Below, piece by piece: positions 29,927 to 34,700 of a stretch of 64,000 bases of DNA. The notes under the pieces were generated by a model. That model saw only the letters and a program-made list of their open reading frames with translations. It was not told the origin of the DNA and ran no database searches. The translations under genes and the position numbers were made by a program. This stretch comes from Tetramitus jugosus (lineage: Eukaryota > Protista > Heterolobosea): assembly GCA_937625935.1 (NCBI GenBank), contig OW569380.1, forward strand, positions 372,001 through 436,000. Direction: 5' to 3'. Position 1 is the first letter of the stretch. The number at the start of each line of letters is the position of its first letter.

Positions 29927-30159
29927 TCTCTGTTTTGGATATTTTGTTGTTGTTTTTTTGATTCCAAAGCAGAGAACAATCGACGTGTGTGAAAAGCTTT
30001 TCCAGTGGATGAAGTCGCGATCTGCCACGATCCTTGATGCAACGTCTCATCGGAGCTGAAATTCTAAAGTCCGACCCGCCACCAGCACAAAAAAAAGCAC
30101 GAAAGCAAAATACTGTAGTAGAAGAAGACATACACGCAAAAAAGCTCACATAATCACAC

Positions 30160-31443
30160 ATGTACAACACTTCGAATCATCAACCTCACCCAACAGCAAC
30201 AGCACCACCTATCATGATGGGTGGTATGCCACCTCATCCACGACCCCCTCCACCACATGGCTTTCCAATGATGCCACTACCTCCTCACATGGCTCCTCCA
30301 GGAAGTCATCATCAACTACCACCACCACCATCAACACTCCAACAACAACACCAACAACAATCGCATCCACCACATCAACCATTGCCATATCCTCATCAGC
30401 ATAACAACAACAACATGATGCCACTTCATCCATCATCATCATTCAGTCAACCCAACATGATCAATCCACTCTTAAACAAGCTTCAACTCCCTCCTTCTAT
30501 TCTCAAATTGTTTGAGGCAAGACCACCACCACCATTTGTTCCTCCAAAAGAAAGGACATCAGCTCTTCAGTACTCGGGAATTGCTCAATTTGTTCAATTC
30601 ATGGAAGATACGCAACCAGAGCTACCAGAATACAAAATGCCAGAATCAAGACTCAAACGCAAAGAACGAATCTCAAAAGAGAGAAAAGAGAAGCACGAGA
30701 GAGAAATTAGAGAAATTTTACAGATTTGGGATCCAAGTAAGGATGAAAAGGCAACAGGTGACCCTGCTGCGACACTGTTTGTTGCCAAAATGAACTATGA
30801 AACAATAGAAGAGAAATTGAAGGAAGAATTTCAAATCTATGGTCCTATTAAATCACTGCGAATCGTTAGGAAAGAAATGCCCGATGGAACAACAAAATCA
30901 AGAGGCTACGCATTCATCGAATACGAAAATGTGGAAGACATGAAAAAGGCGCTAAAGTACGGTGATGGAAAAAAGATTGACGGTTTTAAGGTTTTGGTGG
31001 ATTATGAACGTGGTCGATTGCAGACCAATTGGAGGCCGAGAAGACTCGGTGGTGGCCTGGGTGACACGAGAGCCACCAAAGAGAAGGGAGAAGACAAGAA
31101 AAAAAAGAGTATGTTATCATCTTCTTCATTCGGTGGTGGCGGTGGCTCTCACCCCTATCACTCCTCCTCTCGTGGCGGCGGTCATTTCAATAGAGGTGGT
31201 GATCGAGGAGGATCGCATCATCGCTCTTTCCATTCATCTCGAGGAGGAGGAGATCGAAGAGGCGGTAGAGATGAGGGCGGTGGTGATCGTTATCGATCAG
31301 ACCGTGGTGGTGGATACAGAGATGATCGATCTGGTGGCGGTGGTGGCTACAGAGGAGGTGACAATCGGTCATCATCCGGTGGAGGCAATAGATATCCCTC
31401 TGGTGGAGACTCGAGAGGCTATAAGCGCGAAAGAGAATTCTAA
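30160..31443 (+). CDS. SNRNP70: U1 snRNP 70 kDa protein
   Basis: LPPSILKLFEARPP, WDP..GDPAATLFVA, RRM with SRGYAFIEY, VDYERGR..WRPRRLGGGLG, and an RG/RD-rich tail. Confidence 0.96.
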   Translation: MYNTSNHQPHPTATAPPIMMGGMPPHPRPPPPHGFPMMPLPPHMAPPGSHHQLPPPPSTLQQQHQQQSHPPHQPLPYPHQHNNNNMMPLHPSSSFSQPNMINPLLNKLQLPPSILKLFEARPPPPFVPPKERTSALQYSGIAQFVQFMEDTQPELPEYKMPESRLKRKERISKERKEKHEREIREILQIWDPSKDEKATGDPAATLFVAKMNYETIEEKLKEEFQIYGPIKSLRIVRKEMPDGTTKSRGYAFIEYENVEDMKKALKYGDGKKIDGFKVLVDYERGRLQTNWRPRRLGGGLGDTRATKEKGEDKKKKSMLSSSSFGGGGGSHPYHSSSRGGGHFNRGGDRGGSHHRSFHSSRGGGDRRGGRDEGGGDRYRSDRGGGYRDDRSGGGGGYRGGDNRSSSGGGNRYPSGGDSRGYKREREF

Positions 31444-31524
31444 TCGATATCTATCTACATATTCCCAGACGCACACTGCTGCTGAACCACTCTACTCCTC
31501 AGAGATCTCAGAGGTCAGGACCTC

Positions 31525-31589
31525 AATAAACCATCCATACGAAAGGTAAGTTGTAAACAAGTACGGTATGTTGACCATTCTTTTTTCAG
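31525..31589 (+). promoter_or_regulatory. AATAAA plus clustered 5' splice-site motifs; candidate 44-nt 3'-UTR intron (31546-31589)
   Basis: AATAAA 31525-31530; AG|GTAAGT 31544-31551; GTATGT 31566-31571; TTGAC..TTCTTTTTTCAG acceptor ending at 31589. Confidence 0.45.
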
Positions 31590-31740
31590 TGTCCTCTCTG
31601 ACCTTCCATTGTTGAATTTCGCTTGTTGAATTTCTCCTCCAGTTTCATACTTCAACGAATTTGTGCATGAAAATTTTTTCACACCAATAAAAAAAATTAT
31701 TGAGCGCACAAGAACGAAAACAACACTCAACAACAGAAAA

Positions 31741-34700
31741 ATGAACCTGAATCCAACCACATCACCCATCAGCATCTTCTCTAATGTTAGACAAAAGGCA
31801 TTGAGACCTTCCAAAAATCCAAACAGCAATTGGGCCACCATGGCCATCGTTTTAGACGCCATTACCGAAGTTCTTCAACAACAATCACAACACAACAATG
31901 TTTTGGCCTATTTTGGAGCATTTTTATCCGCATTGGAAAAGGAGACGAAAGCTGCTCACATTGCCGCTACTCTTCAACTCATTTTCATTGTGAGTCCTCA
32001 TGTGCCTGTTGCTGCCTTCCGAATGAAGTTTGATTTTATTGCACAATTGTACGTGAGATTGTTAACTCAACATGAACGGTCCGAAATGATTGTGAAGCAG
32101 GTGCGTTTTTTTTTGCTTTTACGGTTTTCGCGACATTGCAATTTTTTTGCTGACACGAATGTGTTTTTGGTTTTTATTGTTGTTATATGTTTTAGCTCTT
32201 GACTTGTGTGACGTGGTTGCTCCAATCCCAAGAGAATGAAATGTGGGCTTCCAATGAACTATTGAGATCTCTCTTTCAAAAATTACTCTTGTTCTCCACT
32301 GATTCCAAATCAAGTGTTCGTTCCAAGACAAAGGAATGCCTAGAACAGCTGTTGAATGTGAAAATGACAGCTACTAAACCAGCCATGTTCAAACTAGTGA
32401 ACACCAGTATGATTCAACTGACCATGAGTGTCGTTGAGACCTGTACGACAAAAGAAGCTCAAAAAATGATTGATTTGTTGATTTTGTTGCAAGATGTTTT
32501 GAAGCTTTTGAGCAGTGCTGTAAGTATTGTTGTTAACTGTTGCATAGCTTGCAATTGGTTGTCGTTTTTGTGTTTCTGAAGCTAACACCAATATTTTTTT
32601 CTAAAACGCTGCTTAATTCAAATAGTCCATCTTGTCCATTTCAAGACAATTGCTCAAATTATTACCCATGAAAAATCCTCAACTCTGCACTCTGACCAAC
32701 CAAGTCTTCAACAGCTTGTTCTCATCCAGTTCTCAACTATCCATCTCCTCAGAATCATTGTCTCAATTGTTGCAAGTGTTGCAGAATCAACAAATGACAT
32801 CCGATGTATCCTCCAGTCTCCAATTCATTAAAATGCTAAAGTCTGGTTTTATTGCATTGCAAAAGTTGGATGACATTGAATGCAGCAACCAATTGAACAC
32901 TGTTGTTCAAACTTTGCTCTCATTCTTCCAATTGGATCAACATGAGTTGGCTGCTACCACAAGTGATGCACTAAAGAGCTTGATTCAATACTGTATCAGT
33001 GATGCAATGATTAGCGAAGCAGATTCAGTCAATAATCCAAGTGCACCTCTCCTCTCCATGATTCAATCCATCTCCAACGCAATCAACTACAAGAATAGAA
33101 ACAATTTGGATTCCGTGTTGGCAGTGCAAGAACAATTGTTCAAGAGACTTGGAAGAGCTTCTTATCCACTGTTGAATTCCTTGTTGATTTCGATTGAACA
33201 GTTGAATGAGTCGCCTGATTTCCATTTGCACTCTTCTTTGGAAAAGTGCATTGTGGCTGCTGTTTCCGCCATGGGCCCTCGTAAGGTCTTGGAATTGTTG
33301 CCATTGAATCTCTCTGGAAATGGAAGAGCTAGAACTTATTTATTCCCAATTTTGAAGAGAGGTATTCGAAACACGGATTTGGCCTATTTTGCACAATATT
33401 TTGCTCCTTTGGCCACTCAATTCTTGAACCGATCGAACGCTGCTGCTCAGAACGATGAAAAAGCTACAGCAAAGAACTACAAGAATTTCTATGATCAGAC
33501 ATATGCTTTGTTGCCAGGTTTCGTTTCCTACTGCCCTGACTTTGGGACTGTTTTCCCAAAGATTGCCAAGCATTTGGGTATCATTCTATCACAGGACAAA
33601 GATTTGCAATCAACTATTTGTTTGACTCTATTGAAAGCCATTGGAACCTGTCAAGAAGTGATCGAACAAAATGGACAAGTACCAGAGAATGTTGTCTTCA
33701 GTGTTGATCAAGCACACACCAATATTGCCGTTGTGGCTAAGTTTGCAAGAAACTACTTGCCAATTTTGTTTACTGTATATGGTGAATCCAATGAACAATT
33801 GAGATCCATCATTTCGGAAACAATTGCATCTATTTGCAGCGTGTCTACGAGCGAGATTGTTGACGAGTACTTTAAACAAGTGTTGAAGAAGTTGTTGGAG
33901 GCTGCAACTGAGTTGAACAAGCCAGATTTGGAACCAGCGGTCACTCGTGAAGTATCTCACAAGAGAGATATCATGGTTGACTTGGCTTTGGCAATGGCTC
34001 CATGTCTATCGAGTCAAACTACCAACCTCTTGTATCAAGTTTTCCAACCGCAACTAAGAGCATTGAATCACTCTGCTCAAAAGAAGGCTTACAAGGCAAT
34101 TAACACAATCTGCAAGAAACAAAGAGGATTTGTCCTCATGCATCTCGATAGCTTGATCACCACATTCGATGAGTGTTTGCCAGTTTGTGATGATGCCAGT
34201 AAGAATTATCGTGTCAAATGCTTGATGACATTTGTTGAGTTGATGAACACGAGCGATGTTGAAAAACATTTGCCTCAATTCTTTGCTGAAGCCATCATGA
34301 ACGTCAGAGGAAAGAATAAGAAGACCAAGGATTCTTCCTTCCTGTTCATCAGAGGCTTGGTTAGAAAGTGTGCTTTTGAAAATGTGTCCTTTGAAAATAT
34401 TGCAAGAGAACAATTACCAGCATTCTTGAATTCAGCTCAACAACAACGAGTCAACACATTCTTCCAGAAATTGTTGGGAGGTCTTGCTGCTTCATCCGAT
34501 ACTATGATTGGTGGAACTATTATGGTTCTCTCAAGCTTGTTGGTTGAATACTCTGGCTATCTAGAGACCATTCTTCCAGATATCTTGCAATCTGTTTTCA
34601 TCCTGATGCAATATGACAGCAATGATGTGATTTTAGGTGTTGTGAGCTTTGTCAAGACTTGTCTCGCTATTATCGATGACGAGTCCTTGAAGTTGATGCT

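Follow-up and report, generated by a model that had tools for sequence, protein, structure and literature searches.

A splice-or-polyadenylate composite site at the end of the U1-70K gene of Tetramitus jugosus as a candidate U1-sensing feedback element

Our analyses of a stretch of 64,000 nucleotides from the heterolobosean protist Tetramitus jugosus (C37:372001-436000 of the 26.35-Mb assembly G000; hereafter the window, to whose first letter all unprefixed coordinates refer) identify a composite site at the end of the gene for U1-70K (SNRNP70), a core protein of U1, a small nuclear ribonucleoprotein (snRNP). A 5' splice site (5'ss) lies there between a poly(A) signal and its cleavage zone. 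Transcripts of the gene occur in two forms, one ending at this proximal zone and one, represented by a single contig, in which the 5'ss has been used and the RNA extends to a distal poly(A) signal, and 5'ss motifs recur after the U1-70K stop codon in other heteroloboseans. We put at roughly 60% the probability that the gene end operates as a splice-or-polyadenylate site acting as a U1-sensing negative feedback, a reading in which we infer how the site responds to the U1 level, what becomes of the spliced form and which sign the feedback has.

The U1-70K coding sequence (CDS) is one unbroken open reading frame (ORF) on the forward strand (30160-31443, 427 aa, stop codon TAA at 31441-43) without any intron, identified in a profile search of the window proteins by the Pfam families U1snRNP70_N (5.8e-19) and RRM_1 (2e-16). 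Its transcript starts at about 30100, the position at which a contig of RNA run X1 and the environmental contig L042 both begin. Between its stop codon and RRP12, the downstream neighbour, whose ATG is at 31741 and whose product begins with the RRP12 HEAT repeats, the following features were located (X1, X2 and X3 are RNA runs, L042 and L043 environmental contigs, and L001 and L002 the loci of the two U1 small nuclear RNA (snRNA) genes, all described below; a slash marks an exon-intron boundary).

31444..31545, + strand: 3' untranslated region (3'UTR) segment common to both mRNA forms, 102 nt, covered by contigs of X1, X2 and X3 and by L042 and L043
31525..31530, + strand: proximal poly(A) signal AATAAA, read from the sequence, with five RNA-derived contigs ending 14-24 nt downstream
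31544..31551, + strand: used 5'ss AG/GTAAGT, supported by the junction 31545/31643 in L042 and forming 8 contiguous bp with the L002 U1
31545..31557 (about), + strand: proximal cleavage and polyadenylation zone, from contig ends at 31544, 31545, 31553 and 31554
31546..31642, + strand: 3'UTR intron of 97 nt, GT..AG, absent exactly from L042 and present in the window
31560..31566, + strand: weak donor-like A/GTACGG, from the sequence
31565..31572, + strand: second 5'ss-like site G/GTATGTT, from the sequence, with 7 contiguous pairs to the L001 U1; the commonest donor type of the genome
31571..31575, + strand: TTGAC, from the sequence
31578..31589, + strand: T-rich TTCTTTTTTCAG, from the sequence; no junction ends at 31589
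31598..31602, + strand: branch-like CTGAC, from the sequence, 41 nt before the used acceptor
31630..31642, + strand: pyrimidine tract and used acceptor CAG (31640-42), after which L042 resumes at 31643
31643..31708, + strand: distal 3'UTR exon of the spliced form (L042 1434-1501)
31686..31691, + strand: distal AATAAA, 17 nt past which L042 ends

Direct reading thus returned every motif listed in a preliminary description of this DNA, namely AATAAA at 31525, AG/GTAAGT at 31544-51, the weak A/GTACGG, G/GTATGT at 31565-71, TTGAC and the TTCTTTTTTCAG ending at 31589.

The short form is documented by contigs from four runs of RNA or probable RNA, which share 95-99% identity with the window and were aligned to 4,801 letters of it. 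U1-70K contigs end at 31544 and 31545 in X1 (two contigs), at 31554 in X2, at 31536 in X3 and at 31509 in X6, an oligo-dT library, while L043, a metagenome-scan contig of 96% identity, ends at 31553, after the string AATAAACCATCCATACGAAAGGTAAGTTG. Both L043 and the X2 contig cover only the first 8-9 nt of the 97-nt intron, unspliced, and then end. The ends at 31544-31554 fall where the preliminary description had proposed to look for cleavage, and place the end of the short form at about 31545-31557, the AAA at 31555-57 being indistinguishable from a poly(A) tail. No contig in the four runs spans any part of 31555-31714, and RRP12 contigs begin at about 31714-31725 in three of them.

The long form is given by L042, a transcript-like environmental contig from the Joint Genome Institute (JGI; 1,501 nt, 98% identical), in which 30100..31545 is joined to 31643..31708 and which contains the whole U1-70K CDS. 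Its junction reads ...ACGAAAG/TTTCATAC... and corresponds to the exact GT..AG excision of 31546-31642, an intron that begins with GTAAGT and terminates in CTCCTCCAG. L042 extends from the transcript start to a poly(A) signal and lacks exactly one GT..AG unit, so that it is best taken for a spliced mRNA; a genomic deletion of just 31546-31642, specific to one strain, is a conceivable but far-fetched explanation. The donor that had been proposed beside the poly(A) signal is therefore real and used, and, as the contig carries the complete U1-70K CDS and stops at 31708, ahead of the first RRP12 contigs, this junction in a transcript extending past about 31545 belongs to U1-70K and not to the RRP12 5' UTR. 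Junctions are detectable in the contigs of the RNA runs, since the two RRP12 introns of 95 and 106 nt (32098>32194 and 32519>32626) were recovered as controls in the same data, together with a 78-nt intron in the upstream minus-strand gene. The 97 nt of the 3'UTR intron are typical of these RNA-verified lengths, and the branch-like CTGAC has a counterpart in the 95-nt RRP12 intron (32099-32193 or 32101-32195, the boundary being ambiguous by 2 nt), where CTGAC stands about 45 nt before the AG. The junction lies 102 nt past the stop at 31443, beyond the limit of 50-55 nt associated with nonsense-mediated decay (NMD), so that the earlier proposal of a 3'UTR intron more than 50 nt past the stop stood, but not the acceptor at 31589 that had been assigned to it. 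A look-up of the exact protein returned no further contigs of the L042 type, and L044, from a relative of 81% identity, ends within the CDS and provides no 3'UTR.

The arrangement of the element places the two processing events in direct opposition. The GT of the donor (31546) is 15 nt past the proximal hexamer, which is exonic, and the first 45 nt of the intron hold the cleavage zone, a GU-rich GGTATGTTG and a U-run at 31581-86. Proximal cleavage and splicing are mutually exclusive, because the cleavage site is inside the intron and cleavage strips the acceptor from the transcript. As the cleavage zone and the GU- and U-rich stretches fill this first part of the intron, a role as the proximal poly(A) site's U-rich downstream element is more likely for TTCTTTTTTCAG (31578-31589) than one as an acceptor. 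Two strong and one weak U1-type 5'ss motifs are packed inside 28 nt (31544-31571); no junction from the second strong one (31565-31572) was seen in the RNA contigs or in L042, and it may double as a GU-rich downstream element. Folding of the region is no better than that of its shuffles (z +0.9 and +0.7), so its U1 sites should be accessible. Further downstream, the distal AATAAA (31686-91) could alternatively be a TATA-like element of the RRP12 promoter.

In the mechanism that we propose, the short mRNA would be produced whenever proximal cleavage wins. U1 snRNP bound to the donor, helped by the second U1 site 20 nt on, would instead cause the cleavage site to be occluded or outrun; transcription would then continue, the intron would be removed and the RNA would end past the distal AATAAA. 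The resulting spliced form, with its long 3'UTR, would be expected to be degraded by NMD or to be otherwise poorly expressed. U1-70K being one of the core proteins of U1, a rise in active U1 would leave less productive U1-70K mRNA, a negative feedback on a limiting U1 protein. Factors of NMD and of the exon junction complex (EJC) are encoded in the genome (profile search: UPF1_Zn_bind, 241.8 bits; Upf2, 41.1 bits; Mago_nashi, 84.1 bits), which does not imply that NMD depends on the EJC in this organism. The preliminary description had also invoked the ability of U1-70K to inhibit poly(A) polymerase. This contact cannot be assumed here, because the translated C-terminal tail is RGG/RD-rich, with isolated RS dipeptides only and no RS-repeat domain. 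Steric competition at the cleavage site is sufficient without it, and the missing RS domain weakens that particular contact, not steric occlusion.

The genome contains two U1 snRNA genes, and each finds one perfect partner in the U1-70K 3' element. The main gene (L001 1501-1648, G000:C37:178816-178963, 62.4 bits) has the 5' end AUACAUACCU and the stem-loop I loop GAUCAAGAAG, and the second (L002 1501-1648, G000:C52:156912-157059, 51.9 bits) has the canonical 5' end AUACUUACCU and the loop GAUCAUACAG. The AGGUAAGU at the used donor, starting 14 nt past AATAAA, forms 8 bp with the L002 5' end, and the GGUAUGU located 20 nt beyond the used donor pairs over 7 bp with that of L001 (ACAUACC). In a heuristic intron set for the genome (lengths 56-300 nt), the commonest donor is G/GTATGTT, matching L001, which suggests that two U1 classes serve two donor classes, with L001 matching the commonest donor GTATGT. 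This set comes from a stricter heuristic, which recovers all three RNA-verified introns and replaced a first version that was too noisy. The two U1 genes share upstream CGCATAAATTT and CTCTGGC boxes, and a 5S rRNA gene is located 1.1 kb after the L002 U1 (L002 2757-2876).

A first alternative, which we consider unlikely, dispenses with regulation: an ordinary poly(A) site would by chance have acquired a donor-like heptamer, and occasional read-through RNAs would be spliced at it as noise and then end in front of the RRP12 promoter. GU- and U-rich sequence is to be expected downstream of any poly(A) site, and the pattern was picked after being seen, the motif class GGTRNGT used in the counts below having likewise been defined after inspection of the data, which weighs against the feedback proposal. 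So do several properties of the RNA evidence. The spliced form is known from one contig of one sample, compared across strains at 98% identity; the library type of L042 is not on record, its RNA origin being inferred from its ends and from the exact removal of the intron; assembled contigs, including those from total and oligo-dT libraries, more often represent the short form; and contigs give neither isoform ratios nor exact poly(A) sites. The rarity of the arrangement in this genome and the recurrence of its donor motifs in other genomes argue in the opposite direction.

Across the whole genome, AATAAA followed at 5-30 nt by AGGTAAGT occurs at 5 sites, compared with 27 for the reversed control. 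The corresponding figures are 102 and 314 when the second motif is GTAAGT and 55 and 93 when it is GGTAWGT, while GGTRNGT pairs 8-40 nt apart number 240 (951 in the control), and the combination of AGGTAAGT with TTTTTTCAG 20-50 nt further on is unique in the genome. The preliminary description had asked for the background rate of GTAAGT beside AATAAA, and this proved low. The deficits, by factors of 2-5, hint at genome-wide selection against donor-like motifs after AATAAA and against tandem donors. As a control for sequence after stop codons, we took all ORFs of at least 150 aa, both from the window, where U1-70K and an overlapping ORF in an alternative frame were left aside, and from twenty further stretches of 10 kb. 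GGTRNGT was found within 120 nt of the stop in 1 of 41 ORFs of the window and 3 of 135 elsewhere (4/176 in total, about 2.3%), and two such sites in 1 of the 176.

Nor was the arrangement encountered at other clear gene ends among the sites examined. The other four AATAAA..AGGTAAGT sites are mostly coding or not at a 3' end, two of them resembling ordinary coding-region introns. Among the 34 of 55 AATAAA..GGTAWGT sites that were examined (33 besides U1-70K), no other clear gene 3' end with RNA support was found, and none of the 33 is in or beside a splicing gene, most falling in opposite-strand ORFs, coding exons, the first exon of the next gene or repeats. Several of the matches are identical or near-identical copies on different contigs and so belong to dispersed repeats or duplicated segments (L062 and L070; C44:17994/C50:297598; C38:210064/C46:125438; C21:44989/C38:373430).

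The conservation analysis covered every heterolobosean genome that could be reached. Among named protists, the closest relatives of the protein come from Acrasis kona and Willaertia magna and share about 50% identity over the conserved part, with plant sequences scoring equally; the top protein match, P0001 from Drosera, was set aside as a genuine plant tandem gene irrelevant to U1-70K here. In related genomes, which the preliminary description had named as a check, donor-like sites follow the U1-70K stop in four cases, those of Acrasis, Willaertia and two Naegleria species, far above background. These sites, recognized in the genomic sequence as GGTRNGT, are located 20-107 nt past the stop, as follows (distances from the stop codon).

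Acrasis kona (L004): stop, 35 nt, AATAAA, 7 nt, G/GTAAGTG at +49; CAG/GTGGGT at +65; distal AATAAA further on
Willaertia magna (L005): ATG/GTAAGT at +24, the true stop being judged from the conserved ...DYDNR end of the protein
Naegleria lovaniensis, two copies (L006, L007): AAG/GTAGGTAT at +50 and +63; AG/GTATGT 44 nt further in each
Naegleria gruberi (L008): AAG/GTAGGTAT at +20; AAG/GTACGT at +62; ATTAAA 15 nt before the first donor

The order of elements in Acrasis kona is that of the Tetramitus site, and tandem donor-like sites are present in Acrasis and Naegleria as well. The 3'UTRs of all these genes do not align. On both strands of loci of about 5 kb, the sites after the stop account for 2 of 3 GGTRNGT occurrences in Acrasis, 1 of 3 in Willaertia, 2 of 4 in N. 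lovaniensis and 2 of 2 in N. gruberi. The chance of at least one GGTRNGT in 120 nt is 0.023-0.05 per locus, which gives a joint chance of about 1e-6 over four lineages taken as independent, and on these sequence counts the recurrence is significant even with a generous post hoc penalty. Two deposited gene models bear on these positions: the U1-70K model of Willaertia magna looks wrong (L005 3250-3432), with a frame change and a 46-nt terminal intron, the ...GYRDYDNR end placing the stop at 3352-54, and that of N. gruberi is a partial one of 202 aa (L008 2001-2870), the ORF continuing to a ...DYDDR end with its stop at 2868-70.

The comparison also has sides unfavourable to a conserved composite site. 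No obvious acceptors were found beyond the donor-like motifs at the Acrasis, Naegleria and Willaertia U1-70K loci. The adjacency of poly(A) signal and donor is clear only in the Tetramitus window and in Acrasis; N. gruberi has ATTAAA, and no canonical hexamer is present by the donor in N. lovaniensis or Willaertia. Furthermore, the U1-70K gene of the chytrid Spizellomyces has no site in the 300 nt after the stop, and L010, an environmental transcript of unassigned taxon, has no donor motif after its U1-70K stop.

Outside the Heterolobosea, two loci hint at a wider spread of donor motifs in the 3' region of U1-70K genes. In Balamuthia mandrillaris (L040 3269-3290), CTG/GTAAGTAA and TTG/GTGCGTT occur 12 nt apart at +211 and +223 after the annotated stop, and these tandem GTAAGT/GTGCGT sites are 2 of the 4 GGTRNGT on that strand of the 4.6-kb locus. 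A JGI soil contig of unassigned taxon encoding P0002 (L009 1018-1385) is a U1-70K transcript with a 368-nt 3'UTR that has GGTAAGT at +190 and carries CAGGTAAAGCCAGTAAGTT just before its terminal AATAAA; GGTAAGT and CAGTAAGTT are thus kept near the poly(A) signal in a mature mRNA of another protist. Within Tetramitus, the gene for another U1 protein, U1C (L031, G000:C29, CDS L031:1099-1614 on the minus strand), shows G/GTATGTG 12 nt after the stop, followed by a T-rich tract and CAG, with AATAAA about 150 nt downstream, against the motif background rate of about 2.3%. The U1C genes of Acrasis (L038) and Willaertia (L039) lack such a donor motif past the stop, and U1C is kept outside our main claim.

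A second alternative retains U1 but not splicing. U1-bound 5'ss near a poly(A) signal block 3'-end formation in the late 3'UTR of bovine papillomavirus type 1 (BPV-1), in the 5' long terminal repeat (LTR) of human immunodeficiency virus type 1 (HIV-1) and in telescripting, and U1 might likewise mainly silence the U1-70K poly(A) site, the read-through RNA being lost in the nucleus and splicing and NMD being incidental. The position of the donor between hexamer and cleavage site, with a second U1 site just beyond, speaks for such silencing, and 10 positions of the Naegleria sites can pair with a canonical U1 5' end, beyond the needs of splicing, although Naegleria's own U1 may differ. Moreover, splicing at closely spaced 5'ss is rare in vertebrates (PMC3798272). 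We nevertheless judge this explanation distinctly unlikely, given that the donor is used for splicing in L042 and that a U1-70K tail lacking RS repeats does not allow a poly(A) polymerase contact to be assumed.

The sign of the proposed feedback could, thirdly, be the opposite one. In mammalian cells, a 5'ss motif kept in the terminal exon blocks nuclear export (PMC4380460), and the Tetramitus short form, when cleaved at about 31554, keeps AG/GUAAGUUGU; because of this motif, the short form might not be the productive one, a point that weighs against our proposal. The spliced distal form would then be well expressed, as splicing aids export, and the short form would be retained or unstable. 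The prevalence of the short form among contigs of total and oligo-dT libraries, the fit of the junction to the NMD rule in a genome that encodes the machinery, and the failure of a positive feedback to provide homeostasis make this very unlikely in our view.

The 44-nt mini-intron of the preliminary description (31546-31589, with TTGAC as its branch) is highly improbable. The GT..AG unit with its T-rich tract is present, in a combination unique in the genome, and units of 42-47 nt bounded by GT and AG can be drawn in Acrasis, Willaertia and Naegleria, the Naegleria unit of 42-44 nt being, however, the mere spacing of two donor-like motifs. The junction 31545>31590 was not seen in the four RNA runs or in L042, whose acceptor is 31642, and 44 nt is shorter than every intron observed by RNA (78, 95 and 106 nt) or inferred by the heuristic (at least 56 nt) in this genome. 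A similar unit in form only was noted at L036 1504-1560 (G000:C28:300003-300060), where AATAAACACCCACAG/GTAAGT precedes a 35-nt GT..CAG unit with TTGAC in apparently non-coding sequence. Finally, a block of polyadenylation by free U1-70K bound to a U1 stem-loop I mimic at 31530-31547, comparable to the action of U1A at the polyadenylation inhibitory element (PIE), was rejected as scarcely credible: AUACGAAAGG resembles the human loop AUCACGAAGG and AUCCAUAC the loop AUCAUAC of the second U1 gene, but the main U1 loop here is GAUCAAGAAG, the likeness to the organism's own loops is weak and partly just the AAG/GU donor consensus, the stem has 3 bp at most with no significant fold, and the stretch shows no conservation in Acrasis or Naegleria.

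Sequence differences among strains were also recorded in the environmental contigs. Indels affect the Gln/His/Asn-rich N-terminal region of U1-70K (30346 and 30402; window 30340-30420), and substitutions and indels are numerous in the first 48 nt of the 3'UTR (31450-31491), where X3 has a deletion of 16 nt; among the strain differences listed, none falls between 31492 and the contig ends.

The feedback that we favour for Tetramitus U1-70K resembles several known systems without coinciding with any of them. Plants and animals are known to sense U11, and vertebrates U1, through the snRNP's own 5'ss. In vertebrate SNRNP70, a cluster of cryptic regulatory 5'ss in intron 7, reportedly conserved among vertebrates only and rarely spliced, is bound by U1 snRNP and leads to inclusion of an exon with a premature termination codon and to NMD (Rosel-Hillgartner et al. 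2013, PMC3798272). By analogy, the same gene would use closely spaced U1-type 5'ss as a sensor and a non-productive isoform of the NMD type in Tetramitus. The vertebrate cluster, however, is in an internal intron and activates an upstream alternative 3' splice site (3'ss) to yield the premature-stop exon, whereas the Tetramitus CDS is intronless, its sites overlie the poly(A) site in the 3'UTR, the first of them serves as the donor and the protein is unchanged; the two elements share no sequence homology. No activation of an upstream 3'ss and no premature-stop exon were found in Tetramitus U1-70K, whose CDS is uninterrupted and whose sole junction seen is in the 3'UTR.

A similarly close parallel may be the U11 snRNP-binding splicing enhancer (USSE), a tandem of U12-type 5'ss in U11-48K and in the 3'UTR of U11/U12-65K, the latter with a switch between short and long 3'UTRs (Verbeeren et al. 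2010; 2017, PMC5473595). Both would be cases of an snRNP-protein gene bearing tandem 5'ss of its own snRNP in the 3'UTR, with a productive short and a non-productive long form, and the USSE choice also involves competition with cleavage and polyadenylation and a U1 site. The USSE nevertheless belongs to the minor spliceosome, with U11, AT-AC/U12-type introns, activation of an upstream 3'ss and a nuclear long form, whereas here the sites are of the U1 type and the donor flanks the cleavage site; tandem U12-type motifs were not found at the Tetramitus element, where the motifs are of the U1/GT-AG type.

U1A autoregulates at the PIE of its own mRNA, and with it and the viral elements the Tetramitus site shares a binding site for U1 or a U1 component placed no more than tens of nucleotides from a poly(A) signal. 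Those elements are upstream of the hexamer, or have a distant donor, and are unspliced, and they rely on RS-like or PIE-specific contacts with poly(A) polymerase, which are not evident in this U1-70K. Intron 3 of CstF-77 contains an intronic poly(A) site that competes with splicing, is modulated by U1 and is autoregulatory (PMC3708835). The kinetic competition and the feedback on a processing factor are alike, with the roles exchanged: CstF-77, a 3'-end factor, senses cleavage and has a non-coding short form, whereas in Tetramitus a splicing factor would sense U1 and both forms code for the complete protein. A limited literature search found no earlier description of a U1-70K 3'-end composite of donor and poly(A) site, nor of such a feedback in Heterolobosea.

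To our knowledge, the homeostasis of U1 snRNP is understood mechanistically only in vertebrates (U1C/U1-70K) and for U1A. A distant protist appears to solve the same problem with a simpler device, which fits donor, acceptor, cleavage site and poly(A) signal into about 190 nt. If this is true, eukaryotes have come to use a particle's own 5'ss motif for feedback repeatedly or by common descent. It is a speculative and rather unlikely extension that the sensing of snRNPs by decoy copies of their own 5'ss in the genes of their specific proteins is ancient, possibly of the age of the last eukaryotic common ancestor, with Heterolobosea (Discoba) holding a minimal form in which U1 occupancy directly sets productive output. 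In Tetramitus itself, the element would constitute a compact natural reporter of U1 activity and of the competition between splicing and polyadenylation, and it would give initial access to NMD and the regulation of RNA processing in Heterolobosea, the group that includes Naegleria.

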